This document shows positions 35,772-64,000 of a stretch of DNA of 64,000 nucleotides, piece after piece (within the stretch, counting starts at the first letter, position 1; the number at the start of each line of letters is the position of its first letter). This DNA comes from Takakia lepidozioides (taxonomy: Eukaryota > Plantae > Bryophyta). Made by a program: the position numbers and the translations under genes. The stretch lies in contig CM060733.1 of the NCBI GenBank assembly GCA_030704615.1, forward strand, positions 7,750,001-7,814,000. The letters are read 5' to 3'. The notes beneath the pieces are model-generated. The model saw only the letters and a program-made list of their open reading frames with translations, was not told the origin of the DNA and searched no databases.

Positions 35772-36042
35772 CGGCAGCCGGCAGATCTGAGTTGGCACAT
35801 TTGACCCGCGGCTTTAACCCGACACCTCGATCATTGGCCGACGTGGTATACGTGGCTGCTACACACTGGATGGACTTTCACTGTAGCGCTTCAATGTGAA
35901 CGCTCCGGCAGCCCGCAGATCTGAGCTGGCACATTTGACCCGCGGCTTTAACCCGACACCTCGATCATTGGCCGACGTGGTATACGTGGCTGCTACACAC
36001 TGGATGGACTTTCATTGTAGCGTTTCAATGTGAACGCTCCGG
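35772..36042. repeat. Near-perfect 134-bp tandem duplication upstream of the RBM34-like gene
   Basis: 35772-35905 is repeated at 35906-36039 with only a few substitutions. Confidence 0.95.
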
Positions 36043-38289: not shown

Positions 38290-38435
38290 TGCAGGTAAGC
38301 AGCCATGCATTTCTGATCTTCATAGTGAGAGATTTCAGTGAGAGTTTGGGTTCCACGGAGTAGACAGTGGAATCCCCACGGATCTCATAGTATATAGGAC
38401 AATAGAAGAAGTGTTCTTCAGTTTCAATTTCATGG
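38290..38435 (-). mobile_element. Second fragment of the LINE family found in PAL intron 1
   Basis: The reverse complement reads GAAATTGAAACTGAAGAACACTTCTTC..TACTATGAGATCCGTGGG..GGAACCCAAACTCTCACTGA, matching 23955-24080. Confidence 0.85.
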
Positions 38436-38436
38436 A

Positions 38437-39688
38437 GAGAGAGGGAAGATATTCATGTCATGTCAAGACATGGACAAGACCAACTAGGGTCATTGTCAAT
38501 TAAAGACATAAACAGCCCATGATAGGGCACCATCTAACATTTCCAGTCTTGTCATAGCACACCAAGTGACGCCACCCATTCAGTCATGATAAAACAGGGT
38601 GGGAGGGCGGGGTATGTTCATAATCAGATTCTTGTCATGTACCCAAGTGACCCTCTTGCACAATATAAATCAGATTGTAACCTCAGATTATATCATCCAT
38701 AGTTATTCATAAGATATGCACCATGCAAGATATCATGGGCATATAAGAACTTCTTGCCACATTACAGATCCAAGATATGTATACACAAGTATCTTGAAGT
38801 GATCCAAGACAGCATTATGCAAGGTAGGTAAGAACAGCCAGCCCTACAACACATTCAGGGAATGTTCATACACGCAACTGGAAGGACCAGCCTGCAATTA
38901 ATTACACTTTGTGCATGCCACCAAGTAAACTTCTTGGGCATGGCAAGCCATATTGCAGCTTCACATTTGGCCAAATGTAAGTACCCCAAGGCGTGCATCG
39001 TGCAAGGCCTTCTGGGTGAGTAAGAACAGCCTGTCATTGTACATATTCAAGACCTGTGTACACATGATTCTTGTTGGCCCAGCCTACAATAAATCAGACT
39101 CCAAACATGCAACCAAGTGATCACTTTGGGCATGACAAGACTGACTGCGACTTCATTCTACATCATGTACAGTTGCCCCAAGATATGCATCATGTAAGGC
39201 ATTTTGGCATGGAAGAAAGGCCTGCCCTGTCACAGCATCCAGATATGGACACACATACAATTTGAGTGCCCAAGATCAAGCCCACTTGGCCAAGATAAAT
39301 CATACAATGCAAGTGGCTGTTCATATGGCAAAATAAAGTAACTAATCACTGGCCAGAGTCCTTTAGAGCTTACCATCACTGTTTCCGAGGAGGCTAATGC
39401 CATGTTTTGCAAATAGATCCTCATTATGCTCCATTCCACATCAAATCCAGGTCTGAAAACGGTCTGTCATTGCCTTATTAGGCTATCTTCTTTTAGAAAA
39501 ACCAGGCCTCCTCTTTCTTAGAGCCTAACAGCCACTGATGCCTTTACCCTCACATCATCAATCTTCTTTTAAGGCCAAAAAAAGTACCTAGTCTAAAAAT
39601 CCACAGGCAAAGCTGTCAAAGATTCAAGACAGGGTAAGATTCACATGTTGAGCTGCACGAGACAGGGCTGCCAGGCCGAAATGCTCCA
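38437..39688 (-). mobile_element. Unclassified element, terminal segment copy R1
   Basis: Collinear with 39953-41258; shares the GAG(A)(G/C)GGA(A/G)GATA..TGTCATGTCAAGACA boundary with the copies at 53361 and 59032. Confidence 0.8.
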
Positions 39689-39952
39689 TCAGCTGTTCAG
39701 TCACTCCCCCTCCCCACCTTCATTTTTAATTATTTTTCCCTCAACACTCCCTCTCTCTCCACATCCTGATGGAGAGGGAGAGATGAGGGAAAATAAATAA
39801 ATAAGAATGTGGGGGGGGGAGGGGGGGCGGGGAGTGACTGAGCAGCTGGTGCGCTCAGTCACTCCCCCCCCCACCTTCTTTTTTAGTTTTTTTTCCCCTC
39901 CTCACTCCTTCTTTCTCCCTCTCTCCCTCTTTCTCCACATCTTCATGGGACA

Positions 39953-42900
39953 GAGGGAGGATATTCATGTCATGTCAAGACATGGACAAGACCCACTAGG
40001 GTCATTGTCAATTAAAGACATAAACAGCCTATGACAGGGCACCATCTAACACTTCCAGTCTTGTCATAGCATACCAAGTGACAACAGCCATTCAATCATG
40101 ATAAAACAGGGTGGGAGGGCGGGGTTTATTCATGTTCAGATTCCTGACATGTACCCAAGTGACCCTCTTGCACAATACAAGTTAAATTGCAGCCACAGAT
40201 TATATCATCCATAATTATCCACAAGATATGCATCATGCAAGATATCATGGGCATGTAAGAACAACTTGCCACATTACAGATCCAAGATATGTATACACAA
40301 GCATCTTGATGGACCTTTATCATATTCCAAGCATGCAACGAATTAATCTTCTTGGGCATGACGAAATATACTGCAGCCTCACTCTTTACCATTGGTAAGT
40401 AACCCAAGACATGCATCATGCAAGGCTCCTTGAATAGGTAAGAACAGCCTGTCCTACTACAGATTCAGGATATGTTCATACAAGTACCTTGAAGGACCAG
40501 CCTGCAATTAATCAGATTTCAAGCATGCAACCAAGTAAACTTCTTGGGCATGACAAAACATATTGCAGCTTCACTCTTTGCCATTTGTAAGTACCCCAAG
40601 ACATGCATCATGCAAGGCCCCTTGGGTAGGTAAGAACAGCCTGCCATATTACAGATTCAAGACATGTATACACAAGCATCTTGATGGACCAGCCTGCAGT
40701 TTATTAGATTCCAAACTTGCAACCAAGTAACCCTCTTGGGCATGACAAGATAGACTGCAACTTCATTCTTCACCATGATTTGGCATGGAAGAAAGGCTTG
40801 TCATATTACAGATTCAAGATATGGACACACAAACATTTTGGGTGTCCGAGACCAAGCTCACTTGGCCAAAAAATAAATCATACATTGCAGGTGCCTGGTG
40901 GCAAAATAAGGCAAATAATCTCTGGCAAAGGTCTAGTAGAGCTTACCAACACTGTTTTCGAGGAGGTTTATGCCAGGTTTTGCAAATAAAATCTCACTAT
41001 GTTCCATTACACACCAAATCCAGGCCTGAAAGAGGCCTGTCATTGCCTTATCAGGCTGCCATCTTTAAAATCAGGGCCTCCTCTTCCTTAGAATCAGCTA
41101 ACAACCATTGATGCCATACCCATAAACCATAAGTCATCTTTAAGGCCAAAACAGTACCTAGCTTAATAATCCACAGGCAATGTTGTCAAAGATTCAAGAC
41201 AAGGTAAGGGCCAGATGTTGGGCTTCAAGAGACAAGCCTATCAAGCTGAAGTGCTCCATTAAAGGCAGCAAAACATAAGTCAAAAGTAAGCATCAGCATG
41301 CCAAACCAGGAGCAAGCGGGCCGAAATCGGGGCTGCGGACAACAGCCAAGTAAAGACGTCATACACAATAGGTTCTCGTTGCCCACATTCTAATCTGCAA
41401 GCTCAAGAGAATTCAAAGCAAGTAGGGATCATCACCTGGTCCCATCACAAGCCCCCACAAAAACGAACAGGTTAGTGAGGATTGTGGAACCCCAGGTGAA
41501 TCACAGACCCCTACACTTGTCATCGATGTCAACTAAGAACCTCAAAAGCAAGAGAGAAAGACATAAAACAAAAGGAACCCTAATCACCAAAAGCACCTTG
41601 AGCGATTGGGGAAGATAATTGTGCGCCATCGCCACTAGCAAAGCAAAGGAGAAGTGAAGCATACAAGCACTCTTGCTATGTTTAAGAAGGGAGAGAGAGA
41701 TACTTCCCACCACAAGCGCCGCTGCGAAAATTAAAAGCCAGAGGAGGGAAAGAGACGATGCATTCACAACATTGTCTCGGGCCGCCTGTGAGAAAAGACA
41801 AAGCGCCGCCATTGCGCATCCCCAAGAGATCGTCCAGCACGGGTATGATGCAGCAAACAGGGTAGCAGCAAAATGCAGACGCCATAACGCTCATCCCGCG
41901 AGCTCAGAAGCACGAGCGGTGCTTTTGACGGCGGGAGAGACACCCTAGGGCTCTTGCCCGATTTTCATCCGTGCAGGATGAGTAATCAACACCACATTTT
42001 TCGAAACCCGACAGATGTCATCTGTAGATAGGTTAAACAGTAGGTTATAGGGTAGGGGTTAGGGTTTCACTCCTTAATTAACCATAATTAAGGGTAATTA
42101 ATCATCAGTCCAAGGTCATCATAAGTTGTACATTTCATCCGGTTCAGATGAAAAAGCCATTGAGTTCATCCGTTGGAGAAAGTTCGTCAGTAGGATGAAA
42201 AAACAGTAAATAACATCCAAAGCATCGATTTTACATTCTAACAGGTAATTCAACATCCCAAAAAAAACTTTTGTGCCTCATCCAGTACGGAAAAAAAACA
42301 ATAAAAGAGGAATGAACGAATTAGTATCCTGGTATTTTTCATCCGGTATGGATGAAAAAAATAGGATGCCAGTGGCAACCCCTACAGAGGTAATTCCTCA
42401 TTCTCAGGTGACTCATCCGGTATGGGTGAAAGTCAATAAAAGAAGAATGAAATCATAGACTCAGCTTAGAGGTAATTTAGTGTCCACCCTGGTAGTTCAT
42501 CCGGTATGGATGAAAAATTGTTATAGGGCGGGTGAAAAAACTGTCACAATCCATCCGATATAGATGGAAAAACAGGAAATTAACACTGATAAAACCGGCC
42601 AATTCCAAGGAGGGAGGGAGACAGAGGGAGAGGGGGGCACCCACCAACCAGCCCCTGGTATGGCAGTCCCTAATGGAGTGAGTGTGGTATGCACTCACCC
42701 GTAAGGGAGTGCATACCAGACCCCTTCATAAGGTTTCTCCCACTGCAAAAATAGTTCCCAATCAAGGGGTTGGAAAAGCCTACTCCTCATCTTTCCTTTT
42801 TCAAAGAATAGCAGTTGCGTGTCATTTGAACTGAAACATGGATAATCATACAAGGGACAGATTCTCTTTAAACCTTGGTACGATATATAGATAATTGCAC

Positions 42901-44640
42901 CACACTGCCATGAGTAGATAATTAACTACCATGGATGTGGGTATCAATCTACATATATCCAGAAGAGTACTCATGAATGTGCATACAAGTAAATGAAAAG
43001 AGCATACCCAATCAGACATCCTTCCAAGATCCGAAATCCCGTTTGCGGATCGGGGAGAAACCCTCCGAGCCCCTCCAGGTCTTGTATGATTCTTTACTAG
43101 CAATGTTGATGGTGGTAGTAGAATTAGACTCCGATCCGCCAGGTGTAGAACGGCAAGGTGGTCTGGTATGTTTAGATGTGTTGGCAAAAGATTGCATCCG
43201 GCCAGAGTGTCCACCCCTTTGGTAGAGGCCTCTTCCACGTACCGGGGTACCTCTTCCTCGGGAAGCATATGTTTTGCCTTGTTGGTGAGGCGTCTGCCCC
43301 TCCATCGTTGCCGCTTGTAGTTACTGAACTGAGGCTTGGGCTGGCTGTCCGAGAAAGTACCAGGTTTCAGCATCTTTTCAATGTATCTGGCCGTCTTGGA
43401 ATCACCCAATCTGACGAGCGGCCTAGCATTGGCGTCAGCTGCAAATTCACAGACTACCTCCATGATGAATTCCCGTATCATCTGGAAGGTGATTTGTGCC
43501 AAAACAGCAGATCTGGCGACCTTCATGATCCATACCAGAAAATTATAATACTTGGTTTGAATAGAAGGGTATGTGTCATCAGGGAAGAAAACCGTCAGAT
43601 TATTCAACATGTACCATACCATATGGTCAAACCAAGACACACTTCCAACACAACCAGATGATGCATTTCCAGACCCACAATTACATCGAATGTAAGGCCT
43701 ATGCCAGTTAAACAACTGACTTTTGTAATTCTTAGATCTGGCTGAACCAGTAGGTAAGTCATTCTTGGTCCGTAAGGTCAAATTCTCACCTTGGTAACAA
43801 AGTTTATAGTAAAAGGTCCGCAGAGGCCATGCAAGGGCAATTGGCTCTTTTTTTAATCTCTGGAAGCTGTCTTTGGCATCCTGTGCACATCTGTTTCGTT
43901 CGGTTGGGTTATGTTGCCCCATTTGACCCACATATCAACCGAAATAGGGGCTAGCAGATTGATGTTGGCCAATGGATGCCACATCATATGGTCATTATTG
44001 GCAACTTCAAGCTCAACTGCCCTAGGAGATAACCAAGGAACGAATTGCTGGTTACCTGGTGTAGCCCCAGCAGCCCGATCTTGTTCCACTTGAGAAAGCA
44101 CAACCTGATCAAAAAATTCTTTTACAGCTTCATTTTCTTCATCCGGTACGTCCATACAACCCAAAATTGGGTGATTACTCATTGTGGGTATAAATTCATT
44201 TTCAACAGTGGTCGAGGACTTCTGGGTGGACACAGGTAAGGCATCTTCATTGTTAGCCAGCCGAAGGGCATCGTCAATTGAGGAGCCCTTTTTTTCCCAA
44301 GCAGCAATCTCAGTAGCATCATCCTCCAATATTTCCAACAACCTAGAGTGGTATTTCTGGAGTTTTTCCAGCCTCTTCCCATTCTTGTTTACCGTAATGC
44401 CAAGAGCAACCTAGTCCTCCAAAGCTAATGTTTCAAGCAATAAAACAGGTCGGTTATCACCGGCATCTTCAATAGCTTCAGATTCCAGCCTTTGTATGGT
44501 AGCATGAAAGTCACCTGATTTGATTTGTGCAAATGTAGCTTGCACTGCTGGAATAGAAGGGGGCAGGGGCAGCTGATATCCAAGGGCCTTAAGCTCATCC
44601 TTCCACTCAGACATGGCCTTGTTGGCTTTCTGTCGGGCTG
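39953..44640 (-). mobile_element. Unclassified element, copy A (terminal segment R2, spacer, palindrome array, hairpin, disrupted unknown ORF 44640-43012)
   Basis: Same module order as 53361-59030; ORF pieces 44411-44614, 43853-44341, 42846-43931 and 43012-43305 are homologous to 57355-58909. Confidence 0.8.
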
Positions 44641-45736
44641 CTGAGCTGCTGCTGCTTAGTCACTCCTCCCCTCCACCTGTTTTTTTTGGTTTTTTCCCTC
44701 ATCACTCCCTCTCTCTCCACATCCTGATGGAACAGAGGAAGAGATGCGGGAAAAGAGGGAGAGAGAGGACAGAAGGAGAGAGCGAAGGAGAGAGAGGGAC
44801 TGTTGAGGGGAAAACAAGAAAAACAAAAGGTGGGGCGGTGGGGGAGTGACTGAGCAGCAGCGGCAGCTGCTCAGTCACCCCCCCCCCCCCCCCACACACA
44901 TTTTTTTTTTTTTCCCCTCAACAGTCCCTCTCTCTCCCTCTCTCTCCACATCTTCATGGGACAGGGGGAGAGAGAGGGACAGAGCTGCTGCTGCTCAGTC
45001 CCCCCCCCTCCCCCCCATTTTTATTTTTATTTATTTTTTCCCCTCATTATTCCCTCTCTCTCCCTCTCCGCCTCTCTCTCCACATCGTGATGGGACAGAG
45101 GGAGAGAGAGAGGGAGATAGGGACAAAGGGACAAAGGGAGAGAAGGAGAGAGAGGGACTGTTGAGGGGGGGAAATAAAATAAAATAAAATAAAATGTGGG
45201 GGGGGCAGCTGCTCCAGTCACTTCCCCACCCCCCCCCACCATTTTTTGTTTTTTTCCCCCTCAGCAGTCCCTCTCTCTCCACATCCTGATGGGACAGAGG
45301 GAGACAGAGGGAGAGATGAGGGAAAAGAGGAGAGAGGGAGAGAGTGGGAGAGATGAGGGAAGAAAATTTTTAAAAAAAGGTTGGGAGGGGGAGTGACTGA
45401 GCAGCTGCTGCTGCTCAGTCACTTCCCCCCACCTTTTCGTTTTGTGTTTTTGGAATGGTGGGGGGTGCTGAGAGCAGCTTGCTGCTGCTGGTCTTAGCCC
45501 CCCCCCCCCCCGGTCTTTCATTTTTTGGTTTTGGCAATGGTGGGGGGCTGACAGCAACAGCAAGTGCTGGTGCTCTCAGCACCCCCCCACCCCCCTCTTT
45601 TCTTTTTTTGCTTATCAGCAGAGAGAGAAAGGGGGAGATGGAGAAGGACATAAAGATAGAGGGAGAGGGAGGGAGGGGAAGGGGGAGGATCAGGCCTTGC
45701 CATGTTTTTGGCATGTGAAATCACACGGTAGTAGTG
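44640..45736 (-). mobile_element. CACTA (CMC-EnSpm) element end: TIR plus subterminal repeat array
   Basis: The reverse complement of 45711-45736 is CACTACTACCGTGTGATTTCACATGC; upstream lie repeated GTGACTGAGCAGC..GCTGCTCAGTCAC palindromes with G/C runs and GA tracts. Confidence 0.75.
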
Positions 45737-46479
45737 TTGTGGGCGCAGGGATAAGCTAGTAGTATGGCGAAGGACAAGGAGAAGGCGCCGCCGAAGGAGC
45801 AAAAATCGCCTGACAACGCTCTCGTCATTGACGGCCGTGTGACACGGTCTACTTGGTCCAAACTCACCAGCCCTATAGGCGGCTATGTGAGAGGACCAAG
45901 CCGTAAGGCCGTCGAGGCCTCCACACCCTCGAAAGAGGTTGGGGATGAGCCTAAACTTGAGGGTGGTGCACCCAATGTTCAGGCTGACGAACTCTAAAGT
46001 AAAGCCATGCTATTCGAAGTATCTATGTGTAGAGTGAACGTGAGATGGAGAGAATGTGCATTTTGAGAGAACGTGAGATGGTGAGAATGTGTATCATCTC
46101 AGGATAGTTCTTGTTTGCCTTAACTACCATTTGCTTTACGACTGCAGTTTTTTCGACTAAGATCTTTCATGCCAAAGAGACTGTAAGTTGAGCTTAATCT
46201 ATAGGATTGAGCAGCTTGCAGGGAGATCAATTCATACGATGTTCATGGTTTAGCTATCCTTAAAATGATTACTTCGTAATCATTTCTGAAAGCATACCGT
46301 CGGACAACCTCTGTTGTATGTCTTAGGAAATGGGCAGTAGTGCTGATAGCTTGTTTTGTCTAGGTCATAAACCAGCGGTTAACATCCCCACCCACAAATA
46401 CTTACACAAATTTTTTGACGTGAAAGTGACAATGCAACGCATACCAAATGTGCAATTTCACATGCATGCATAGGGATAT

Positions 46480-48560
46480 TGACGGTGCTTTTGTGGAATA
46501 TGTACCACCCAATATGGCAACTCGTAGAAGATTGAAAGTTGCTTCATGCTGGGCACGTCCACTTCACCGTCCGTGCCCGCATGGGCCTTCTTCCATCGAT
46601 CCTCCCAAAATTGCCTGGATGGTGTCATGGGGGGGGGGGACATACTTCCTCTTTGTCATCAAACAAGTGTTTCTCTCTTCTTCTCCATCGATGACACATA
46701 GGAAGAAACTTGCGGTAGTTGGGATACACCATCTTGTGAAGATGGCGGGAGCTATGTGCATCAAGATAATCGCCACAATGCAAGCATGTATGGTACCCTT
46801 TGGTACTTAACCCCGAGCAAACAATTAGTCTTGTACTATACATCCTACCACATTAGCAAAGACAAAAAGTTGTCATGTGCATGGCTAATAATGCCATCTA
46901 CCCCACTACGGTGCACAAGACTGTCGCCGCTACTTCAATCAATCCCAATCCTCATCCATATTATCCGGCATTGACAAGTGAATGTACGCGGGTTGTTCAT
47001 GGGGAACATAATATACCTGGATAATCATGCATTGTCCAAAGCAAGATGTCTCTCATCTGAAAAGATTGTCCGGCCATAGGGTCAAGTGAAACATCCAATG
47101 CCGGGACCCCCCTCCATAGCTCCTTAAGTTCATCAACAAGAGGTCGCAAGGACGTGTCAATGTTTGCCACTTGTTTTTTTCCCTATGAGACATTCACATC
47201 ATTGTTTCAATGCTCCACCAATATGCAAATCATACTACAAAATGAATTACACGTCTTACTCCATGATTATGTCAATGATCAATCTTGCATCCGAATTGCG
47301 TCAGAGATCATAAGTTTAATGTAAAATCCAAGGCAATAATAAACATGAAATGAGAAAACTTACCTGGCACAATGACTGCCAATATGATATGGCCTTTTTT
47401 AATTGAAAGATACGGAGGGATGTTGTAATTCACCATGGTCACCGGCCAAGTGGAATGACTACATGATTAGACAGAGAATGGGTTGACCCCATCCGAGGAG
47501 AAGCCGAGGTGGATATGTCGTGGGTCCTCCAAGAGAAAAGGCCACATCTCTTCAATATACCTCCATACTTGTGAATCTTGTGGCCCGCACACCTTTCCCG
47601 GGGGGCTCCGATGCGAGGCGTGCCATCTCATGAGTCTGGCCAAATCGGAGCTACTACGGAGAGGATTCGCGTCTCACCAAGTGCCCAAAGTGCAAGAAAG
47701 ACCGATATCGGAATGATGTCCAAGGGAAAAAAGTACCACGCAAGGTATAATCGCCATTCCCCTCGCATAGAAATTACTTTCTTTAATCTTCTCAATGCAT
47801 GTAAAGTGTATTCCACAAAGTTTAGGTTTTAGAGAGTAATACTCATGTAAGATCTGATTGTGTTTTGGAAGGAGTGAGTGAGGAGTGGAAGGAGCGACGT
47901 TCAGTTTTGACCATTCACGCCCAAATGAGGGAGAGGCTGCTGCATAAATGGAAAGACATAAGGGTGTTGTATTATGTGTGCTAATGGGATGATTACATCT
48001 GGGGGACGTGGGGTATTTCATCCTAGAAAATACATTACTTTCCGATCATCCCGCGATTGAGGGCACAGTACCGGGTTTTATCACATGGACATGCATGAAA
48101 AATCTTATAGCCCATCCCCACAGAGTCCAAGACTTCGCGCGCCTCTTTCCGCGACCGTGGCATCTTGGGTTTCAAGTGTGGAGCAAGGATATAGTCTGCA
48201 ATAGTTCGCATTATGGCAGACATCCCAACATTACTTATGCCAAATCAAATTTGAAGATTGAGCAAAAGCAAGATTGTTGAAAGTCGACTCACTTTCACCT
48301 CTTCGTACAAGGGAGTTCTCGCCTCCCTCTCCATGTCATTTGAGGGGGCCATTTCAGGATCATCGATTGGCCGGGTTCCCTCTCCATGGGGTGCATCAGT
48401 GCCCACATGATGCATTAAGATATCTTCATGGCTTGCACATCCTCCTGGTTAATTCCATGCTCATTGTTGTTGTCACTGTCACTGTCACTGTCATCATCGT
48501 CCGGTACCGTGGGGGCGGAGTTTTGCCCACGGCTCCCGCCTGATGTACTTGGGTTGTTTT
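46480..48560 (-). pseudogene. CACTA/EnSpm transposase (Transposase_21/TnpD) pseudogene with introns
   Basis: RTPLYE..LLLLNL, GMGYKIFHACPCD, LMRWHA, PRHIHLGFSSDG, STWPVTMVNYNIPP, LRPLVDELKELW, WTMHDYPG, KGYHTCLHC, YRKFLP..HRWR; frameshifts and stops. Confidence 0.9.
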
Positions 48561-49609
48561 CGGATGGGGTGCCAAGAGAAAGGACCGGGAAGGGATGGAC
48601 AAAGTCCTAATACGAACAAATGAACATAGAGACATATATTATAATGTGTCCTTGCAACCATACAACTTATTATAAGCGAAATGCAAACAACAACCTTCAA
48701 TGTGTGCGTGCATCAAATATGTCATTCAATAATTACATGTATGTGCGCAACGTCACGCTTGCAAAGTTTCAAACCCAAACAAAATCATTTGCCCTCCCAA
48801 AGACACGTTCACCCTATCAACCAATTTTTGTTTATTAATGTGAAATCCTCTCATGCCATTGCACCCATCAAACGGATGTGGCTCAAGCTTCATTTTTTCC
48901 TATATGTGCTTGAAGGTATGTGCAACACCTGTACAAAGATCCATAAATAAATAAATAAATAAAGTGCCTCCCCAACGACGCACTCACCCTTGAACCAATT
49001 TTGAATTAAATCGAATTTAAATGATTTAAAAAGAAATATTTGCATTTAGAAAATATATTATTGCGGTTTTGAGGAGCGTAATGATTTTATTTTTGGCTCT
49101 ATTTTGTTCTGTGGCATCGGGCTTTGCACCACTGCATCCATGCAAAACATTGAACAAAAAAAAGATGGAAAAAAAAATAGTGTGTTTCTAGGGTTACTTT
49201 TGCAGAACTCTCTATGAAGAGTGCTTGAAGTTGAAGATAACTCAACTTTGGAGTGCAAATGAGAGAACAAAATATGGTTCTGGGTCCAAATGACTTTTGT
49301 TTACTCCCAAATTTTGCACGCACATTGCATATGCTATCATTAATATATGGCTTGAAAATAGAAAATAAAAATAAAAAATCATGTACATACGAAACGCGTC
49401 TCTACGACACGTAGCTGCATTCAACACTAGAATGACCCATTGAATCAACTTGGTTCAAGCTCATATTTGGTCCACATACGCATAAGTATGTTAGATCACA
49501 TATATAAAGTTGCAACCCACATGAGCAACAAGAAAAATATTTACATCAATCGATTAATTGGATGTATACAAAGTACATCATGAGAATATCTACAATGCCC
49601 CTCTACGCG

Positions 49610-50178
49610 ATCCCTGTCTCAAAAGGAACCCTATTTCTATCATACACATCCCACTCACGTTGTAATCGGAGGTCCCAATCATCCCGGGAGAACTCGTATG
49701 ATCCAAATAGCTAGCTGCAAGCCCTAATAGTCCTACTAGCACATGTCATCACAAACATGTGCATCCCCTCACAATATACCGACGTATGACCACAAAAGCT
49801 CTCATGCCCATCGCTTCGCTCGTCCCATGCTACATTGGTTCTCCTAGGATGACCAAAAGAACTGTTGACCAGCCCAGCAACATTGCCGAAGATATCGGGG
49901 TCACCAACACAAAATCTGATCTCAATGGGAGACAACCCCCGTCTACGTACATCCTGTCCGTTGACACAAAAAATGTAGGGTAGGATGTATGGGGCTTCGA
50001 GGCGTAATGTACGGAACTCCGCGGAGGTGTAGTATGGACCGTAGTAGGAAAACAAGTCCACCATGTTGTTTCTCCGAGGAGGAACCACAATATCATTGAC
50101 CGTGAATAAACCCCGACCCATAAGGGGGTCTGTAGCGGATTTCACAACATACCGTCTCCCCCAATACTCAAACTCCAC
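49610..50178 (-). pseudogene. SET-domain protein (divergent), with one premature stop at 49711-49713
   Basis: MGRGLFTVNDI, LFSYYGPY, YIF, GNVAGLVNSS..NV, ASRTIRACS*LFGSY follow SET motif order (GxG, YxG, NxxxxxNHS, ELxxxY). Confidence 0.7.
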
Positions 50179-51390
50179 ATTCTCTCGGATAAGGGTGGGA
50201 GGGTCGAGATGATTCCCCCAACAACGAGGCTGGACGGAAATCCGTCGCGGGAGGCGACGTGTTTTTTTTTATTTATGGGGCCGGGGGTCACAAGCAGCGA
50301 CGGCCCGCCGTCGCGAATACCATTTGTACATTTCAAAAAAAAAGCGGGGCGCAAGCGTGTGATGGTCGGGCGTCGCACGTAGGTGCCGCGTTTTTTTTTT
50401 TTTTTCCTAAGTACTTGAAGCACCTCCTCCCCCTCCCGTTTTTGTTTGTTTTTTGGGAGAGAGGTAGTTCAGAGAGTGGGGTTTAGGGTGGAGGAGAAAC
50501 GCACCTGCTGCTGAGCCCGAGGTGGTCGCAAGGCCCCAAGGTGTTAGCCCCAATGCTGCTCCAACACCCAAGGTAAGCACCGCCTTGTCCCTCACTTTCT
50601 CTCTTGCTTTCTTGCCCTAAGCACGGGCTGATCTCTCTCTCCCCTGTGTGGTAGAAACGCCGCGCAGAGGCGGGATGTAAACGAGCTGAAGAGAGAGAGA
50701 GCCATGGTGAGCGGGGGAGAGATGCCTTGCAGCGGCGGGGACCCGCGCCGTTGGCAGCCGCGACAACACTGCAGCAGCTCGCTTGAAGCACCAGCAGCCG
50801 CAGCAGCAGAGGTAGGTGAGGGTGGGGAGATCGAAAGTCTGTCTTGTCATGTGGGATCAAGGGAAAGATGTCGAGAGTTGTCCATAACTTGTATGTCACA
50901 TCAAAAGTGAGAGAGAGAGAGGGAGAGAGAGGAAGAGATGACGAAACAAAACAAGAAAAAAAGAGGTTGGGGGGGGGAGTTACTTAGCAGAAGGGGTTGG
51001 GCTTTTGGCTCACCCTCGAGACTTTCAAAGTTGGTAAACAGAGGTACGTGCACAATTCCCTTGATAGATTTGAAGAGAGCGTCTCTTTGGTGAGAGAACC
51101 CCAGACATCAGAAAATGAATATTGTCTTCAAGTTGCCCACAGAACGGGCAATTGCACTCTCTCTTTCCTCTCTACTTCTGTTTACTATTCAAATGGTAGG
51201 ATTCCTGCCTTGAGTTTAAATTTCAGTCTGGTGCCAAGAGTGGGAGAGACCCTTGAGCGCATCCATGATGTCATCCCCCATGTCACAAACTAGAAACAGG
51301 TTCAGGGAAGTTTTTTTCCTAACTTCATTTTCATCGGACAATTTTCTGGTAACAGACATGGCTTTGGACACTACACTCTCTAAGTCAGAT

Positions 51391-53170
51391 TTATCCAAAC
51401 ACTTCAAACTCAAACTCGTGCAAGATTATTAACCACCTTGCTATCCTTCCACTTATCAAAGGTTTGTTCACCAAATATATCAGAGCCTGGTGATCCACAT
51501 AAAACATAAACTTTCTTCCCAATAGGTAATGCCTGAATTTCTTGACTGCATAAATCATTGTCAGTGCTTCTCTTTCAGTTGTGCTATAGTTCCTTTCAGC
51601 ACTGTTCATCAACCTGCTAGCATAGTACACAGGTGAATCTATATTTCTTGTAACATTTTGGGCTAATACTGCTCCCAACGCTTCTCCTGAGGCATCACAG
51701 TGAACATGAAATACTACATGCTAGTGAGGGTTAATCAGTACAGGTGTAGTTGTTACTGACAATGTAAGTTCCTCAAAAGCCGGTTGACATTCAGCTGTCC
51801 ATGCAAACACTGCATATTTCTTTAGAAGCTTGCTCAATGGTGCTGCTATCTGTGCATACCGTCTGACAAATCTTCTGTAATAACTGGTTTGTCCAAGGAA
51901 TCTCCTTAGACTCTTAACATTTACTGGTGGTGGAGAGGCTTTAATGGCCTCTATCTTTCTGGGATCCACAAGAAGTCCCCTCTTACACACAATGTGTCCC
52001 AAAAGCACCCCTGAGTTCACACAGAAAGTATACTTCTCTGGATTCAGGCCCAGACCTCTCATCCTGCATCTGGCCAAACATAACTCCAATTTATGTAAGT
52101 GCTCATTCTTAGAGCTGTACACACTGAAATCATCCAAGAACACCTGCATGAAATCATCCAGATACTCATGAAAAGATTCACTTATCACTCTCTGAAAGGT
52201 TGCTGGTGCATTACAAAGTCCAAAAGGCATGACTTTGTATGCATAAGCACCCCAGTCTGTGATGAAAGCTATCTTTCCCTGGTCTTCTTCTGCCACTTGC
52301 ACTTGATTATAACCACTGAAGCCATCCATGAATGAATACATCTCATGGCCTGCCACAGTGTCCAATACCGCTTCTGTGAATGGCAAAGAGAAAGGATCTT
52401 TCTTCGTGCAAGCATTCAACTTCTTATAGTTCACACAAACTCTCAATTTACCATTCTTCTTGGGGACTATCACAATGGGTGACAACCAAGTTGTATATTC
52501 TATCGGGTATATAAACTTAGCCTCAGCCAACTTCTTGATCTCTTCTCCAACCTTCTGTGCATAGTTGGGATTCATTTTGTACCTTGCCTGTTTGATTGGT
52601 ACTGACCCTGGTTCCAGTTCAATCTTATGCTGACGATCTTAGGTGGTATCTCTTTTAGATCCTCGTAGCTCCAAGCAAATACATCTCTGTATTTGATGAA
52701 CAAACTCTTAGCTTCCTCAAAGAATTCTGGCTCCAAATCAGCCCCTACCTTCACCATCCTCAGTTCCTCTTCAGTTCCCACATTCACTTCTCTCACCTGC
52801 TCATCAGCTGTGATTGTCCAACCAGTCACCACTTCATCCTGTAAACTCACAATGGCTGGTTTCTCTAGGATTTCCATTTCTCCCTCTCTTTCTTCATAGA
52901 AATGTGGTGGGTAACTGCTTGTTTCACCCTCACTGGGTGTGCAACGAACAGGGTAGCTTCATGCTCCTCATCAAGTCCTCCCCTCCAGTCATACTCCTTG
53001 ACCCCTCGAGGTCTTCTCATAGCAGGTAATCTACTAGATTTCTTAGTGGTGATTTGTATCTTGTGCATCCTATCATGCACAGTTAGTCACTGGGAATTCC
53101 AGTCATGAAATACCTAGCCTGTTTCAGCCACGGTCGACCCAACAATAAGGAGGTGAAGACTTGCGGGTCC
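51391..53170 (-). mobile_element. Ty3/gypsy (non-chromovirus-like) pol fragment: protease end, RT and RNase H
   Basis: LLLGRPWL, DVFAWSY, WLSPIVIVPKKNGKLRVCV, FMDGFSGYNQ, MPFGLCNAPATFQR, FLDDF, CDASG..GAVL, NYSTTEREAL, DHQAL; frameshifts; no integrase seen. Confidence 0.93.
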
Positions 53171-53360
53171 AGATTCAGATCCTTGAGAATCTCTTCTATT
53201 GTCTTCTACCAGGGCTTAGCCTGTTTGACAGGGCGGTCCTGTTTCCAAGATATAGAGTCGATTGACTTAGGATATCTGGTGTTGGACATATGTTGCAGCT
53301 GAACCCACCAGCTGACCTTGAATTTATCTCGTCGGGAGCTTAAAAGAGAGCAACACAGAA

Positions 53361-56300
53361 GAGAGGGAAGATACTTTTTGTCATGTCAAGACAAAGACAA
53401 GACCCCTATGGTCGTTGTCATGAAAGAACAAATAGACATATCAGCCACTTAACAGTGGCACCATCCATCAATCATCAAGCTTAGAAAATGCAGAATTACA
53501 TCCATGCACAGTAATGTGTTCATGTCAGTATTATTCATAATCCAGAGAGTATGCCACTGATGCTGATTGACCACCAGTCAAGATCATGATACACTTACAG
53601 AGGTCTGGGTGGGATGGCGGGTACTTGGCCATATTTTGGCCTTGATGTGGTGCAGGTCAGATAATCATACAGATTTACTGTCTGCAAGCTGTAATCCAAG
53701 CATACTTACTAAAACCCCATGGGTGTCATGGAGGGTTTTCTTAAAAGAAATGAACACTTGGATATCACAGATTTAAATACCTTGCCTTGCTCGTATTTGT
53801 TTAGACTGGTGTGCAGTACAGCTTGCCCCCACAGGGGATGTGGATATGTCTCGTAAGTTTTCCAGAACACCCCTATACCTTTATTTCTTGCTATAGCTGA
53901 AAATCAAAGCTCATGACACAACAAGGTAAATATAAAGGACAACATACACAGCTTGTGACAGTATATGATATTGTCAGTACACCCTTCACATCATTCCACA
54001 TTTGACCATGTCATGACACCATGTCCAGGGGGTATTTCCACTTGACCACCCTGGTTGCCTCAAAAACCAGTTACCATCTATATTACTGCCATATTTCAGT
54101 GTCAGCCGAATAGCCACAGGCAGAAACTTCACCATACCCTGGCCTAAGCATCTAGCTAACAAAGCCATTTGGGTTGGAACATAACATGGCCTTTTACCAA
54201 CAGAGGTAGCCGAGTAGTTGCAGCAACCATTTCCTTGCATCCTCTCATTTTGTTTCCAACTACCATAAGGTAAGCAAAGCAAACTAGGGCCTGGAAATCA
54301 GATGTGTGTCTCTCACACACGCCATCATAAATCAGGCTGTCACCACATAACAGAGGTTTTCCACTGGCTGGGCCGAACTGACCCATCGTAGAAAGCATTA
54401 CACATGTTCTTCAAAAATCAAGTAAGGAAAGAGGTAGGATCAAGAAAAACCATAGAGTAGTTTAGTTTTTCAACATTTTAAGATGAGTCTTTGGCCAGCG
54501 ATTCCTTCCCCTGCTCTGCAATCTCATTTGGCATCCTGCAGCACCTAGACATCAGAATATTGAGTGGAAGCCCTCACCTGTGCCCGTCCCAAAAACAACC
54601 ACAACGCATTGTGAGTTAGTGAGGATGCAGGAGGTGAGTAACAGGCTTCCACACTTGCTATCGAGGTCAAATATACTTCAATCTAAGCGCTGAGGAAGCC
54701 AAAGAAAGCAGGGAAGCAAAACAAACAGAAAAAGAACCTTTTTTACTGTCTTGGGGGAGAGTCGTCATCTCTCCACAAGCCTAACTGTGTAGGGAGGACT
54801 CCGCCAACACCACAACACTGCTACCTTAACCAAAGCACAGTCTTGCCAAGCACAAGAAAAAAGAGCTTGGTCTCAAAAGGTAGGGAGAGAGACTTCATTG
54901 TTCTACCAAGACGCCGCCATTCATCAAAGATCCAAAGGAGGGCTCCTAGGGAAACGTCATAAGCATGCAGGTGGTACCTCCGCCATCACTGCCGCGGTCC
55001 CCTTGTGCAGCAAAAAAATAGAAAGCTGAGACAGTGAATCTTCCCTCATCTCTAAGCCACCGCCATCGCCTTAAAGAGCCCGCCCAGGCGGCGCTCACAG
55101 GAGCCATAAACACTCAAGGATTGATAGCTCAAGGTATCTATAGCACGAGCACCATTGCTCATCACAAGTCGCCATCGCGTGCGATCTCGCAGCGCAAAAA
55201 GAAAGACATTAGGGTTGCGCAAGGTTTTCCCCTGTCTGGCCCGTCATTCATCCTTCTCAGGATGAAAAACATCTGCCAGTCTGTCCGCCCGACGGATGTT
55301 GTCCGTTTCTCATTCGTGGATTATGAAAAACATCGTGCTTTCATCATGTCTTGCACTCAACGGATGTAGTCCGTATTTTATCTAGGTTAGATGAAAAATA
55401 TGGGGGGTTTTTATACCTGTCTTGCCCTGTATTTAGGTCGTGTCAAATGAAGTCATTTTTTCATCCAAGTTGGATTGAAAAAGTAGAAACACCGTGTCGG
55501 TGTTTGATACAGTCAATGGGCGGGTTTAGGGCCGGGTTAAAGATGGCTTTGTGCGCTTTTTGGGGATTGTCATGCAGTAATTGATTGAAGGAGGAAACAA
55601 TTCTTTTGTGATTGTTAGCAGCTTTTTGTTTGGTGATATTGTAAGCTTATTTTTTAGCATCTCTTCCAATTTTGGAGAGAGTAGCGATCCAGTCCGAAAT
55701 ACTATGAGGGTTATCAAGTGGGGGCATGAGTGGTTGGCATGTTGTTAAGGTATTTAGGCTTAGGATGCCAGGGTCCGTTTTCCAGTTATTTCTTGGGTGT
55801 ATGTGGGAAGTAGTGGGTATGATAGTAAGGGCGCGTCTAATTGTGTGATATGTGTTAAGATGTTGCTTCCAGGCACGTTTTTGTATACGAGTAAGGTAGC
55901 CCCTATTTTGTTTTGAAAGTGTAGTTTACATGGAATCTCAGTGGGGGCGGAGCAGGTGACGATGACGTTTTTGGTCATTTCTTCCATTAAAGTCCCGAGT
56001 GTTTTTTTGGAGGCCAGCCAGGTTTCATCAGGGGAATGCCTCAAGTTATCCTCTGTGAGTATGTCTGATAATTGAAGTGTTAGATGTGTGGATATAGGAT
56101 GGAAGTGTGTTAGAAAGGCGGATATGTTGCGTTGGGGGAGTGGAGATAAGATTCTAGATTGAGCGGGGGGGGCTTGTACTTGTGGAATGGGTCTGAAGGG
56201 AATGAGGGACGGTGGAAAGGCTATAGTGACAAGATAATGGTCCGAGTTGCATAAGCTGTTAATTTGAACATGGCTGGTAATGTATGCAGGAATCTCATTA

Positions 56301-59030
56301 TGTGTTTTGAGGTAAAAACCGTCCAGGAGGCTTAAGGATGAGTAGTTGAGCCATGCATTGGACCCCTAACTCCACCATCTTATCTTCAAGTTCTTTCAAC
56401 TATGCTACAAACTACAACAAATTCCACACTTCTGGAAACATAGCCGCACCATCTTGCTCTTAAAAAAAGGTGACCCTACGGACCTATGCAACTATAGACC
56501 TATTGCACTAGCCAACACTATAGGGATGAGATCAGGACCTGGGGCTTTAGACTTAGATAGTTTTTTAAGGCATGATTCGTAAAGGTCGAGTGTGAATAGG
56601 TCGAGAATACGGTCTGTTGGGGATCCTCTATTGTCTAAGGAGAAGCCGTCTATATCGTGCCATGGGTAGTGTCTAGCTTTGCACATGCAATTGTCATTGT
56701 GGAGATTGGGATGTAGGCAGTTCGTAATGGTGGGTGTGTATGTGGAGGATGCTTGTGACCATATTTCATGGTTAATGTCCGTAGGGAGTTTTGCAACTCA
56801 CAGGTTTTTTAGTGAAGAAATATTTCACTAATTTATTTATTTATTTTATTTTGGATAAAAAACATCCAAAATTCCCTGCAACCCAATTTTGCAATTTTTT
56901 TCAATTTCCTCAAAGATGGAAGTCGGGACAACAATTCCATAAGCCCAGTGTCCAGAGGGAGAGAGATGGAATCCCACCATCCAACCCCTGGTATGGCAGG
57001 CCCTTACGGAGTGAGTGTGGTATGCACTCACCCCGTAAGGGAGTGCATACCAGACTCCTCTCCAAAAGGGCAAACTCTCCCTGCTCATATGCCAATCCTT
57101 CGGAAGATGTCCTAAAAAGGATTATCAGGCTACCCTTAGACAAATTGGGTATCCGAAACAAGTATATCAACCTTAATGGTGTGATTGGGGTATGTATTGA
57201 GCATAGACCCCGAAATAAAACTAGTTTATTCAAGGTATTACATGTGTAAGAAACCAGCTGCTTTATGCATGGTTTTCTTTCTTTTTGTTCCATCAAAAGT
57301 CAACAAATCTGCATACATAAGGGAAAGGACATACCAATTTTAGGTTGTCAATGATCATTCCCAGGCATCAAAGTTCCTCTTGTGGATTGGGGAGAACTCT
57401 CCTGCCATCTGCCTGGATCGGTTCGACCCATGGCTCCCAATGTCGATTGTGGAGCAGGAATTGGATCCAGAGCCTCCATTGGATGTTCTGGTTACGGACT
57501 TAGCATTCTCGGAGTTGGAGAAAGATTGCCGTTTCTGCCCAAACCTGCCACCTCTTTGGTAGCCCCCACGTCCTCTGAAATTAGCACCCCTGCCCCTGTT
57601 GGGTCTCCCTGTTTGCTGGAAAGTGTTCCCTTCAATGCGTTGCCGTTTATAGCTATTAAACGCAGGTTTTGGGAGGCTGTCGGAGAAGGATCCAGGTTTG
57701 ATCAATCTCTCAATGAATCTAGCCCCTTTGGAGTCCGGTAGCTTATCAAGCAATTTTGCCTTGGGTTATCGGCAAAAGTTTCTGCTGCTTCCAAAAAGAG
57801 CTCCCGGATCATTTGGAATGTTATCTGAGCCAGTATTGCAGATCTGGCAGCCCTCATCAGCCATACAATGAAGCTATAGTACTTGCTTTGTGCTGAGGGG
57901 TATGTTGCATCAGGAAAGAAAGCCCCAAGATGGTTAATCATGTACCAGACCAAATGATCGAACCAAGCCACACTTCCAACACATCCAGACAGAGCAGCAC
58001 CAGGTCCACAATTACATCTTAGGTATGGCCTGTGCCAGTTCCAGAGTTGGTTTTTGTGATTCCGGGAACGGACAGATCCAGTAAGGGGATCATTTTTGGT
58101 CCTAAGAGTGATATTGTCCCCTTTGTCATATAGCTTATAATAAAATGTTTTTAAGGGCCATGCAACAGCGATGGGCTCCTTTTTGAATCTCTGGAAACCA
58201 TCTATAGCATCCTGATAACAACGTAGGTGAGCATCAGTGATGTTACCCCACTTCATCCACATCTCAATGGAGATGGGTGCTAAGAGGTTGATGTTGGCTT
58301 GCGGGTGCCACATCATGTGCTTGTTGTTGGCCACGTCGAGCTCAACGGAGTGAGGGGGTGTCCAAGGGACAAATTGTTGATTCCCCGGGGTAGCGCCTGC
58401 TGCCCTGTCTTGTTCCACCTGTGACATTTCCACATGCTCACAGAAATCCTTCACCGCATCAATTTCATGTTCGGGAAGACACATATGACTTAGAAGCGGG
58501 TGATTGGTGACGGAGGGGGTAAAATCCTGCTCAGCATTGGAGGACGATTTCTGGGTAGAAGGGGCTGTTCGTCTTCAGGGTTAGCCAGACGTAGTGCAAC
58601 CTCAATCTTTTCTCCTTTAAGACCACATTCCAAGAGTTCTTTGGTATCCTCTTCAAGGATAGTAGGCATACGTTCATGATAGTCAATCAGCCTGATCATG
58701 CACTTGCCATTTTTATTTGCAGATAGGGACAACTTAACCCAGTCCTCTAGGGCCAAAGTCTCAAGCAACAGGATTGGATTGTCATCACCTGAATCAATAG
58801 CTGCTGAGTCCAATGCTTGCACTTTAGCATGGAAGTCCGTTGGCTTTGTTTGTGCCAACACAACCTGAATAGCAGGGATTGGAGGGGGCAGCGGTGGCTG
58901 ATATCCCATGGCCTGCAGCTCAGCAATCCATTCCGGAGTCTATTTGGTGGAACTCTGCACATAAACTGGAAATTTAGCCTGGTAACCAAAGGATAGTGTA
59001 TGCAGAAACCACTAAGCATACTCGACAGTA
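53361..59030 (-). mobile_element. Unclassified element, copy B (divergent subfamily) with disrupted ORF 58955-57355 and a LINE insertion
   Basis: Same module order as copy A; protein homology and a conserved hairpin at 56988-57053. Confidence 0.8.
55560..56790 (-). mobile_element. Rearranged LINE fragments (APE C-terminus, pre-RT region, inverted RT N-terminus)
   Basis: Minus strand: SLLDGF..NSDHYLV (56350-56230) and LSKSKAPGPDLIP (56780-56522). Plus strand: IPHFWKHSRTILL..KKGDP..NYRPIALANT (56365-56522). Confidence 0.85.
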
Positions 59031-59031
59031 A

Positions 59032-59766
59032 GAGACGGAAGATACTTTTTGTCATGTCAAGACAAAGACAGGACCCCTAGGGACGTTGTCATGAAAGAAC
59101 AAATAGACATATCAGCCACTTAACAGTGGCACCATCCATCAATCATCAAGCTTAGAAAATGCAGAATTACATCCATGCACAGTAATGTGTTCATGTCAGT
59201 ATTATTCATAATCCAGAGAGTATGCCACTGATGCTGATTGACCACCAGTCAAGATCTTGATACACTTACAGAGGTCTGGGTGGGATGGCGGGTACTTGGC
59301 CATATTTTGGCCTTGATGTGGTGCAGGTCAGATAATCATACAGATTTACTGTCTGCAAGCTGTAATCCAAGCATACTTACTAAAACCCCATGGGTGTCAT
59401 GGAGGGTTTTCTTAAAAGAAATGAACACTTGGATATCACAGATTTAAATACCTTGCCTTGCTCGTATTTGTTTAGACTGGTGTGCAGTACAGCTTGCCCC
59501 CACAGGGGATGTGGATATGTCTCGTAAGTTTTCCAGAACACCCCTATACCTTTATTTCTTGCTACAGCTGAAAATCAAAGCTCATGACACAACAAGGTAA
59601 ATATAAAGGACAGCATACACATCTTGTGACAGTATATGATATTGTCAGTACACCCTTCACATCATTCCACATTTGACCATGTCATTACACCATGTCCAGG
59701 GGGTATTTCCACTTGACCCCCCTGGTTGCCTCAAAAACCAGTTACCATCTATATTACTGCCATATT
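59032..59766 (-). repeat. Near-identical direct repeat of 53361-54096 (terminal segment R'), cut by an LTR insertion
   Basis: Base-for-base match apart from a few substitutions; the two sequences diverge after CATATTT. Confidence 0.95.
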
Positions 59767-60785
59767 TGTCGCGGCCCTTTGCCTTGAGGGCAGGGGGTCG
59801 GGACACATGAGGGGCTGCCCCTGTGGTGGGGGCAGCGGCAGCGATAGGTATATGTCGCGCGGCTTTTACTCACCCATCCCTTCGCTATCCGAGGTGGAAA
59901 CTCCAAGATAGAAGAGTTGGAAATCTCTAAGTACTCAGCCCGCTCAGAACAATCAGTCATGACCTACAGCTAGTGTATCATGGGTGTGTTTCCTATTTGT
60001 TTTTCTTTCCGCATTCATGTTAGCTAGCTACCTTACTATTGATAATTAAGTATCCGTTTGCTTCATCAATCTATCGGATTCCATCAACTCATCCATTCAT
60101 TCCACAGCTTCACTCAGATCTCTCTACACAGTGTGAGTATGAAGTGTGTATCAGATTAATATCTATCAAGTATCAGGCTGAAGCCATGGTGTCTCTAATC
60201 TACTCTACATTACAATTCTATAGCTTGCATTCATCAAGTAACAACAGATCGTCACTTCTCCTACTCCGTGCTCTTCATCTTTCCCCTTAGAGATGTGTTC
60301 TCCTCCCTATTTCCAAGCCCTGATGCCAGAAGTCCCCCCCTTTCAGTCCTTGCTCCTAGTTTTATCTTCCTACCCGTTGTTCTAACCGCTTCCCTCACTA
60401 ACCGTCGTCCGTGAACTAACATGTTCCATTCGCAGGTGTCGTTCCCCACAGTCGTTCCCTGTCCTGCTATCCGTTCCCTATGGTCGTAATAGCTTGTGTG
60501 AAACTATGACGGACTGTGACCGGCTGTGTCGGGCTGTGACTGGCTGTGCGACTGTGTTTGGCTATGTCAGGCTGTGACTGGCTATGTGGCTGTGTCGGCT
60601 GTAACGGGCTGTGTTGGCTGTGATGGGCTGTGTTGGGCTGTGTGAAGCTGTGACGGGCTGTGTAACCCCCTTCTAGAGTGCGCTGCTGTCACCCCTAAGG
60701 CTCCTGTTGGTCTCAGTCTGTGCAAAAATTAAGGGTACCCTACAGATCCCGTATAAGTGTCTAAGTCCCAGACAGTCCTCTAACA
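59767..60785 (-). mobile_element. 3' LTR (~1019 bp) of a minus-strand LTR retrotransposon
   Basis: TG..CA ends (TGTCGCG..CTAACA); on the minus strand a polypurine tract GAGAGGGGAAGGGG lies immediately before it (60789-60802). Confidence 0.85.
60505..60665. repeat. ~10-bp GGCTGTG(A/T) tandem array inside the LTR
   Basis: More than 15 degenerate GGCTGTG units. Confidence 0.9.
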
Positions 60786-63800: not shown

Positions 63801-64000
63801 CACTATGATAGGAGACTTTGCGGCAGTACCCTGTAATCTTTTCATCTCCTCTACCAGTGCGTTGTACATTATGTCCGCCCATTCTACCTTTTCTCCTCTC
63901 AGGGCTTTGAGTATTTCCTCTGTGAAGGATCTGCTCAAATACTGTTGGTTCTGTTTCATGGCAAACAGAACGTTCAATACCTGGCCTACCTTCTTAAGCC
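60825..64000 (-). pseudogene. Long 3' extra ORF of the LTR retrotransposon (unknown function; coiled-coil plus aromatic-rich domain), disrupted
   Basis: ORF pieces 63977-63246, 63285-62359, 62355-61891 and 61922-60825 join through two frameshifts and one in-frame TAG; the ORF ends ~20 bp before the PPT and is open to the window edge. Confidence 0.7.

Follow-up and report, generated by a model that had tools for sequence, protein, structure and literature searches.

How does a repeat with one fixed end, variable truncation at the other, and no recognizable enzyme come to lie in tandem on a plant chromosome? The question is raised by a 64,000-nt stretch of the Takakia lepidozioides genome (contig CM060733.1, positions 7,750,001 to 7,814,000), eukaryotic DNA rich in repeats and here called the window, in which four copies of such a repeat, A to D, lie between positions 38429 and 59767. 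An earlier note on this DNA had left the repeat unclassified and outside any known superfamily. A place can now be proposed, since the open reading frame (ORF) of the repeat is homologous to the ORF1, or N-terminal extension, of PLE-X, a group of Penelope-like elements (PLEs). We consider it likely that A to D are dead, minus-sense copies, from two diverged families, of derivatives of these nuclease-less retroelements of the Chlamys clade that lack reverse transcriptase (RT). What is described is an RT-less, ORF1-retaining form of a known, barely described group, and the ORF1-only form is the new part.

Four Copies with a Common 3′ End

The 15-nt terminal motif TGTCATGTCAAGACA occurs exactly four times in the window, always on the plus strand (at 38456, 39968, 53379, and 59050), whereas 0.28 occurrences are expected by chance and four were reached in 0 of 100 shuffles. 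When the boundaries of the four copies are aligned, similarity begins at (A)GAG(A/G)(G/C)GGA(A/G)GATA and extends from this GA-rich tract inward, and the outer (left) flanks are unrelated and cannot be aligned. The single GA-rich boundary with four different left flanks, as first reported, is thus borne out. A subterminal hairpin, GACAAGACC..GGTC(A/G)TTGTC, is retained in A, B, and C, where the stem-loop is present in the centroid folds, and is degraded in D, the copy at 59032 for which degeneracy had been noted.

By self-BLAST and a sensitive cross-comparison, A extends from 38429 to 39689, B from 39942 to ~44650, C from 53355 to 59024, and D from 59025 to 59767. In self-BLAST, A (38429-39689) matches B (39942-41259) at 91% across the first 369 bp and at 77% beyond, and D (59025-59767) matches C (53355-54096) at 98.5% identity over 743 bp. 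A/B and C/D are two diverged families that have in common only the ~70-nt terminus (84%), a ~105-nt palindromic hairpin (42622-42725 and 56953-57059, 88%), and the minus-strand ORF, which matches at 69% at the nucleotide level between 43297-44278 and 57628-58606 and again between 44408-44608 and 58736-58933. The view that all four belong to one family needs correction: the families are two, and C contains a foreign insert.

The sense strand of all four copies is the minus strand, and the fixed end, which bears a pyrimidine tail, corresponds to the 3′ end of the RNA. B and C have the same order, which had been seen correctly from the start: terminus, telomere-like motif, short-hairpin array, long hairpin, minus-strand ORF. 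Read in sense, each long copy consists of a gag-like ORF1, a long hairpin ~280 nt past the ORF1 stop, and a non-coding region of 2–3 kb, closed by a conserved 3′ segment of ~70–120 nt that comprises a stem-loop and a pyrimidine tail (CUCCCUCUGU-like). A metagenome scan for further copies with the terminal motif and a hairpin arm gave zero matches. The parts of the locus are as follows.

38429..39689, minus strand: copy A, a 1.26-kb 3′ portion of the A/B family, 5′-truncated or internally deleted; 3′ terminus at 38429-38506
39690..39941, no strand: array separating A from B, made of GA/TC-rich ~100-nt units in alternating orientation, with the tail junction motif repeated in the loops
39942..42620, minus strand: non-coding 3′ module of copy B, delimited by self-BLAST, cross-comparison, and terminus alignment
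39942-40018, minus strand: 3′ terminus of B with hairpin, from the boundary alignment
40136-40776, minus strand: ~185-bp tandem repeats of B
42040-42062, minus strand: telomere-like CCCTAA motif of B, on the sense strand
42100-42560, minus strand: short-hairpin array of B
42621..44650, minus strand: ORF1 module of B, with an internal tail-like motif at 42621-42630
42622-42733, minus strand: long conserved hairpin of B
43012-44614, minus strand: ORF1 of B, with one stop near 44412 and two frameshifts near 43900 and 43300
44651..45613, no strand: second array of alternating inverted GA/TC-rich units, upstream (in sense) of B
45614-45690: GA-rich tract beyond the second array, the end of the first chain of copies
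53355..54096, minus strand: 3′-terminal 743 bp of copy C, duplicated as D; conserved terminus at 53360-53427
54097..56949, minus strand: remaining non-coding part of C, with the telomere-like motif at ~55200-55212
55240-55480 and again ~56870, minus strand: short-hairpin array of C, split by the foreign insert at ~55480-56800
56950..59024, minus strand: ORF1 module of C, with the long conserved hairpin at 56950-57070
57355-58909, minus strand: ORF1 of C, interrupted by a single stop (58487-58489) and a single frameshift (near 57740)
58910-59024, minus strand: 5′ untranslated region of C, 115 nt, between the end of D and the start of ORF1
59025..59767, minus strand: copy D, a 5′-truncated partial copy directly upstream (in sense) of C, in pseudo-long terminal repeat (pseudo-LTR) position

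Between B and C the spacer from the ORF1 stop to the long hairpin cannot be aligned, and the hairpin itself is ~90% identical; the long hairpin of C has an RNA z-score of −6.2. The motif on the sense strand of B (42040-42062) and C (~55200) resembles the telomere complement and lies beside the short-hairpin array in both. A and B each meet the arrays at 39690-39941 and 44651-45613 at a common CAGCTG..AGTCAC end; these arrays may represent an A/B-family 5′ leader that was copied both ways, or a foldback satellite used as a landing site. In Rfam only sub-threshold matches to generic hairpins were obtained, in the palindromic array, and a search of the window for tRNA genes found none.

The ORF1 Protein

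B and C each carry on the minus strand one ORF of ~515 aa, disrupted by stops and frameshifts. Its product, ORF1, drew blanks in Pfam, in a PDB sequence search, in the ESM Atlas, and in a word-index protein search. An exhaustive HMMER search with ORF1, in contrast to these blanks, returned 164 relatives, the best of them 38–40% identical and most of them 450–560 aa long, from short Logan, ENA, and JGI contigs together with many Chara braunii proteins, and in some of the Chara gene models the homologue is joined to RT, CCHC, or other segments. Both B and C encode the motif CNCX8C (C-N-C-X8-C), within a core C..CxCX8C..WFDH, and in an alignment of 65 homologues residues C157, C159, C168, W174, D176, and W180 are almost invariant. 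The C-terminus is rich in RG (GRG..RGRGGYQRGG), which suggests RNA binding.

The AlphaFold prediction from the single sequence had a mean local confidence (pLDDT) of 35, and that from the 65-sequence alignment a pLDDT of 83 with a global score (pTM) of 0.79. The latter model gave no fold match: all Foldseek hits against PDB had E > 1, and the best Z in a wide VIA-align comparison was 3.3. Because the predicted fold is without a match, it is from the RG-rich tail and the Cys/His motif that we infer a putative function for ORF1.

Comparison of the B and C ORF1s gives a nonsynonymous divergence (dN) of 0.16–0.24, saturated synonymous divergence (dS), and a dN/dS of ~0.08 over 160 codons. It follows from this ratio that ORF1 was functional, under purifying selection, through nearly all of the divergence between B and C.

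Relatives with ORF1 and ORF2

PLE-X is an endonuclease-less type within the Chlamys clade, found in Chara and Selaginella and, by BLASTP hits, in mosses (Craig et al. 2021, PMC8557442). Its N-terminal extension carries CxCX1-8C, and CxC, DKA, a telomerase-like RT, and a long spacer between motifs A and B are listed among PLE-X/Chlamys features (PMC8557442). The CNCX8C of the window ORF1, which is homologous to the CxCX1-8C part, fits this pattern, and like PLE-X (e.g., PLE-X1_sTam) the window copies have no GIY-YIG endonuclease.

The relatives of the window ORF1 were scanned with profile hidden Markov models (HMMs) on six-frame translations, and six moss-type copies at five loci make up the set: a JGI metagenome contig (L001), two near-duplicates of it (L002 and L003), a 1.18-Mb ENA contig (L006), and Ceratodon purpureus with two copies (L005). 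In all six, the ORF1 homologue is followed at 0–315 bp by a second ORF, ORF2, of ~700–770 aa. Against Pfam the ORF2 proteins give weak RVT_1 matches only. Their alignment has an invariant CxC and an invariant L-D-K-A, followed by the RT motifs A (VADITRCYExIP), B (GIPMGFSCSP), separated from A by a spacer of ~95 aa, and C (YIDD); by our reading motif A looks telomerase-like. No GIY-YIG was found in these ORF2s in Pfam at E up to 0.1. With a Chara protein whose N-terminus is ORF1-like, they share 35% identity over its RT part, and the ORF1 of L006 is 35% identical to the window ORF1. At the nucleotide level, no similarity was found between the window copies and the loci of the relatives.

Direct repeats of 1205 bp (99.9%; 6887-8091 and 12282-13486) flank ORF1 and ORF2 in L006, the downstream repeat overlapping the end of ORF2, and repeats of 1320 bp surround one of the L005 copies, which is nested inside the second. 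The tails and repeat starts of L005 lie in (TC)n/(CT)n, a counterpart to the CU-rich tail in the window. In the window, D, which equals the last 743 bp of C, lies directly upstream of it as a pseudo-LTR-like partial tandem. Taken with the L006 and L005 repeats, the D-C layout matches the pseudo-LTR, or partial tandem, layout typical of PLEs.

Two of the loci deserve a remark of their own. In L005 (CM026427.1, 323181-344413), the 3′ part of one PLE-X copy houses a second; both have ~1.3-kb pseudo-LTRs at 99.9%, and the junctions fall in (CT)n runs. The locus is a clean example of PLE-X elements landing on each other's tails. At a further locus, L004 (Chara braunii BFEA01000820.1), an ORF1 homologue occupies 9893-11371 and no moss-type ORF2 was detected within 34 kb, so this may be another RT-less copy or one whose RT is too divergent for the profile.

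Absence of a PLE-Type RT from the Window

Searched by tblastn with 286 collected proteins, the window matches only in the two ORF1 regions. An ORF2 profile HMM run on all six-frame fragments between 38 and 60 kb of the window gave noise (best E 2.7), and the ORF1 profile gave 1.7e-101 and 8e-77 on the same fragments. Since there is no trace of ORF2, the window copies are RT-less derivatives only, not autonomous members of PLE-X. Pfam on the ORFs and profile searches found no enzyme domain inside the copies, in agreement with the first impression that RT, DDE, HUH, and tyrosine recombinase motifs are missing, and the window ORFs gave no match to GIY-YIG.

Several observations weigh against the assignment to PLE-X. 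No RT of the PLE/telomerase type, with CxC, DK(G/A), and the A-B insertion, is present anywhere in the window, so that the assignment rests on the homology of ORF1 and on architecture. For the relatives, a profile of ORF2 found no RT among PDB sequences, and the class of their RT is set by motifs and by the published description (PMC8557442). Hammerhead ribozymes were found neither over the window at the Rfam gathering score, nor at E up to 10 or 1 over 38300-42900, 53300-54200, and 54100-59100, nor at the gathering score in L001-L003, L005, and L006. Neither an empty site nor a target-site duplication could be identified for the window copies. D may have been cut off by a later insertion rather than being a pseudo-LTR, and the tail-like motif that follows the long hairpin internally raises the possibility that B and C are chains of two modules.

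Single Elements or Chains

This last point can be examined through the tail. The motif ACAGAGGGAG on the plus strand (CUCCCUCUGU in sense) has 23 matches in the window at ≤1 mismatch vs. ~5 expected. Exact copies are located at the terminus of B (39950), directly after the long hairpin (42621), and in the loops of the palindromic arrays, and a near-match lies at 56952 in C. From its positions at the B terminus and after the long hairpin, it follows that the same pyrimidine tail stands behind both hairpins. B and C might then be chains of two independent RT-less elements, namely, an ORF1 element of ~2 kb, closed by the long hairpin and a tail, and a non-coding element of ~2.7 kb, closed by the subterminal hairpin and a tail, each having landed on the tail of the other, with A and D as 5′-truncated copies of the non-coding element alone.

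We regard such chains as possible, though the doubts outweigh the attractions. Both junctions consist of a structured hairpin and then a pyrimidine tail, ACAGAGGGAG follows the long hairpin just as it marks the terminus of B, A and D match the non-coding part only, and modules reported to be joined at GAGAGAGGG elsewhere in this genome count in favor. However, the order of ORF1 module and then non-coding module is kept in two families diverged to saturation, which is unexpected of independent landings; similarity (TGGAATTG) runs on across the internal tail; and the autonomous relatives have true partial tandems, with the repeat overlapping the end of ORF2.

Direct Repeats and Tandem Order

The pair formed by C and D lends itself to a second explanation, in which C-D is a non-autonomous, LARD-like LTR retrotransposon with LTRs of 743 bp, the ORF as gag, and a Ty3/gypsy element as mobilizer. 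As in LARDs and TRIMs, direct terminal repeats (743 bp, 98.5%) bracket an ORF-bearing interior without pol, and a gypsy RT-RNase H fragment adjoins at 51391-52575. We nevertheless find this explanation very unlikely. LTR end motifs, a primer-binding site, a polypurine tract, and a target duplication are all absent around C-D, as judged by eye and with no LTR-finding program: there is no TG..CA, the repeats starting with ACAG.. and ending with ..ATATTT; no tRNA-type (TGG-type) primer-binding site follows, and no purine tract precedes, either repeat; and the flanks, GCAAC vs. GTCGC, have no matching duplication. Moreover, ORF1 pairs with a PLE-type RT, not an LTR-type pol, in 6/6 moss-type relative copies, A/B have no LTR pair, and the L006 repeat overlaps the end of ORF2.

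Rolling-circle mobility, by a Helitron-like or other transposon whose terminator read-through would yield tandem copies, was among the suggestions of the earlier note and accounts for a subterminal hairpin together with head-to-tail copies. It is hardly tenable here, given that ORFs of at least 90 aa in or between the copies encode no Rep/HUH or helicase, that the hairpin is ~40 nt from the end (~10–12 nt in Helitrons), that there is no CTRR terminus, and that the sole conserved ORF is of a family accompanied by an RT. Just as improbable is an origin by segmental or tandem duplication, without mobility, of a locus with a domesticated or host gene, for which the adjacency of the copies in pairs might speak, since the outer flanks are unrelated, the two families are at dS saturation, ORF1 is broken in both, and the relatives of ORF1 are multicopy in Chara and lie within RT-bearing repeat units in other plants.

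Three further identities were rejected. The copies are not DIRS/Ngaro elements, for they have no tyrosine recombinase or RT and the sequence after D is unmatched before D. They are not long interspersed elements (LINEs), giant or otherwise, as the unit has no LINE RT and the LINE-like pieces, the insert in C and a fragment in the flank of A, are not shared between copies. Nor are they transposons with terminal inverted repeats, since the ends of B do not form an inverted repeat, and neither do those of C.

A Proposed Mechanism

The reading that we favor, RT-less derivatives of PLE-X, bears on how the copies came to lie where they are. The copies may favor simple repeats: their tails are GA/TC-rich, the first chain of copies ends in a GA-rich tract, and the Ceratodon relatives are bounded by (CT)n, although A adjoins a LINE fragment without a GA tract. 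The copies, putative passengers, were probably mobilized in trans. We suggest that the RNA would be transcribed from an upstream partial copy and bound by the ORF1 protein. The 3′ stem-loop would be recognized by an RT that autonomous PLE-X copies elsewhere in the genome provide in trans. The pyrimidine tail would pair with an exposed GA-rich DNA 3′ end, in a microsatellite or in the tail of a resident copy, and would thereby prime cDNA synthesis with no need of an endonuclease. Head-to-tail chains would arise by landing on resident tails, and truncated copies such as A and D by incomplete or internally initiated copying. The original suggestion of target-primed, giant LINE-like or Penelope-like mobility with a preference for GA tracts survives in its Penelope-like part, given the fixed 3′ end, the 5′-truncated and head-to-tail copies joined at GA/TC tracts, and the homology of ORF1 to PLE-X; the giant LINE option falls with the absence of a LINE RT.

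We infer a single ancestral loss of ORF2, followed by diversification, as the simplest reading, in which case the purifying selection on ORF1 would have acted in RT-less elements. One step further, it is tempting to speculate that an ORF1-only "half-PLE" lineage without an RT of its own existed and diversified, keeping a selected CxCX8C/RG-rich ORF1 and two tailed RNA hairpins; we advance this tentatively and would not wager on it. The mammalian HAL1 elements ("half-L1") offer a parallel: these ORF1-only derivatives of LINE-1 have an RNA-binding ORF1 under selection and have lost the RT ORF, the RT presumably being borrowed. The window copies are alike in that ORF1 was kept under selection and the RT ORF is gone, and differ in class (PLE rather than LINE), in an ORF1 protein unrelated to that of HAL1, and in a pyrimidine-rich tail in place of poly(A). 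If the half-PLE reading is true, the endonuclease-free, tail-primed integration of PLE-X cannot proceed without the ORF1 protein, acting in cis, and ORF1 might be the missing targeting or priming factor.

PLE-X is the least understood group of Penelope-like elements, and its RT-less copies are informative because they show which parts are indispensable: the selected ORF1, the 3′ stem-loop, and the pyrimidine tail at every junction. These retained parts are candidates for three roles in PLE-X: RNA signal, priming sequence, and protein partner. It would appear, too, that Penelope-like elements, as LINEs, can give rise to protein-coding non-autonomous lineages. For annotation, a repeat of no known kind with an equally obscure 500-aa ORF becomes classifiable; the ORF1 family has no Pfam model despite its 164 relatives.

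Comparison with Known Systems

The window copies share with PLE-X a pseudo-LTR or partial tandem arrangement, 5′-truncated copies, lengthening tandem repeats, and streptophyte hosts, and perhaps an association with simple repeats. They differ from it in having no RT and no detected canonical hammerhead, with which PLE-X families are reported (PMC8557442). The tail is of the GA/TC type and the target is not 28S ribosomal DNA. In addition, the published account has the ORF1 part as an intron-joined N-terminal extension rather than a lone separate ORF, and it leaves open how PLE-X integrates without an endonuclease (PMC8557442).

Athena and Coprina are endonuclease-less, telomere-attaching PLEs that terminate in telomere-complement repeats beside a hammerhead and are found at chromosome ends (PMC8557442). 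The window copies resemble them in the lack of an endonuclease, in the proposed priming by a short RNA 3′ repeat that pairs with an exposed complementary DNA 3′ end, and in the reverse-complement telomere-like motif that B and C carry in sense. In the window, by contrast, the tail is rich in C and U, the telomere-like motif lies ~2 kb inside the copies, and the location is interstitial.

Non-LTR retrozymes (bioRxiv 10.64898/2026.07.22.740005) are short, non-coding, hammerhead-bearing non-autonomous derivatives of PLEs. They are like the window copies in being non-autonomous, PLE-derived, and arranged in tandem, and unlike them in that the window copies are 4–6 kb long and have a protein gene and no detectable ribozyme.

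Neighboring Sequences

In the foreign insert in C (~55480-56800), LINE-like peptide motifs run in both directions, "..NSDHYLV.." reading from the minus strand and "..KKGDPTDLCNYRPIALAN.." from the plus strand, as might result from the 5′ inversion of a LINE; no significant Pfam match was obtained over this segment, which is recognized by motif only. Next to the tail of A lies one member of a 128-bp repeat in inverted orientation (38308-38431 and 23955-24082, 87%), whose paralogue near the PAL gene extends further and whose sequence resembles the Cys-rich C-terminus of a LINE ORF2. The PAL exon itself finds its best matches, at 82% identity, among metagenome proteins without a species name, and the top-scoring match that has one is from a liverwort, which places the host among land plants. 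By this resemblance, the tail of A would adjoin a 5′-truncated LINE fragment without a GA tract.

Directly left of C, and unrelated to the finding, minus-strand ORFs at 51391-52575 match RVT_1 (E 1e-25) and RT_RNaseH (E 1e-27), as an RT and an RNase H of the Ty3/gypsy type. Beyond D, a short tandem array of GGCTGTGA-like units occupies 60480-60660, to the right of its flank. Farther on, four consecutive minus-strand ORFs (365, 154, 308, and 243 aa) at 60825-63977, partly coiled-coil-like, run off the end of the window; in Pfam they gave only a sub-threshold match to DUF948 (E 0.008), and they probably encode the protein of another unclassified repeat.

To the left of A, there is a 137-bp tandem duplication at 35772-36042 (97% identity) and a PIF/Harbinger transposase fragment at 36721-37484 on the plus strand (DDE_Tnp_4, E 7e-9, for the ORF 36822-37262). 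The transposase fragment has 74% DNA identity to L006:5363-5712, and L006 is therefore probably from a related plant.

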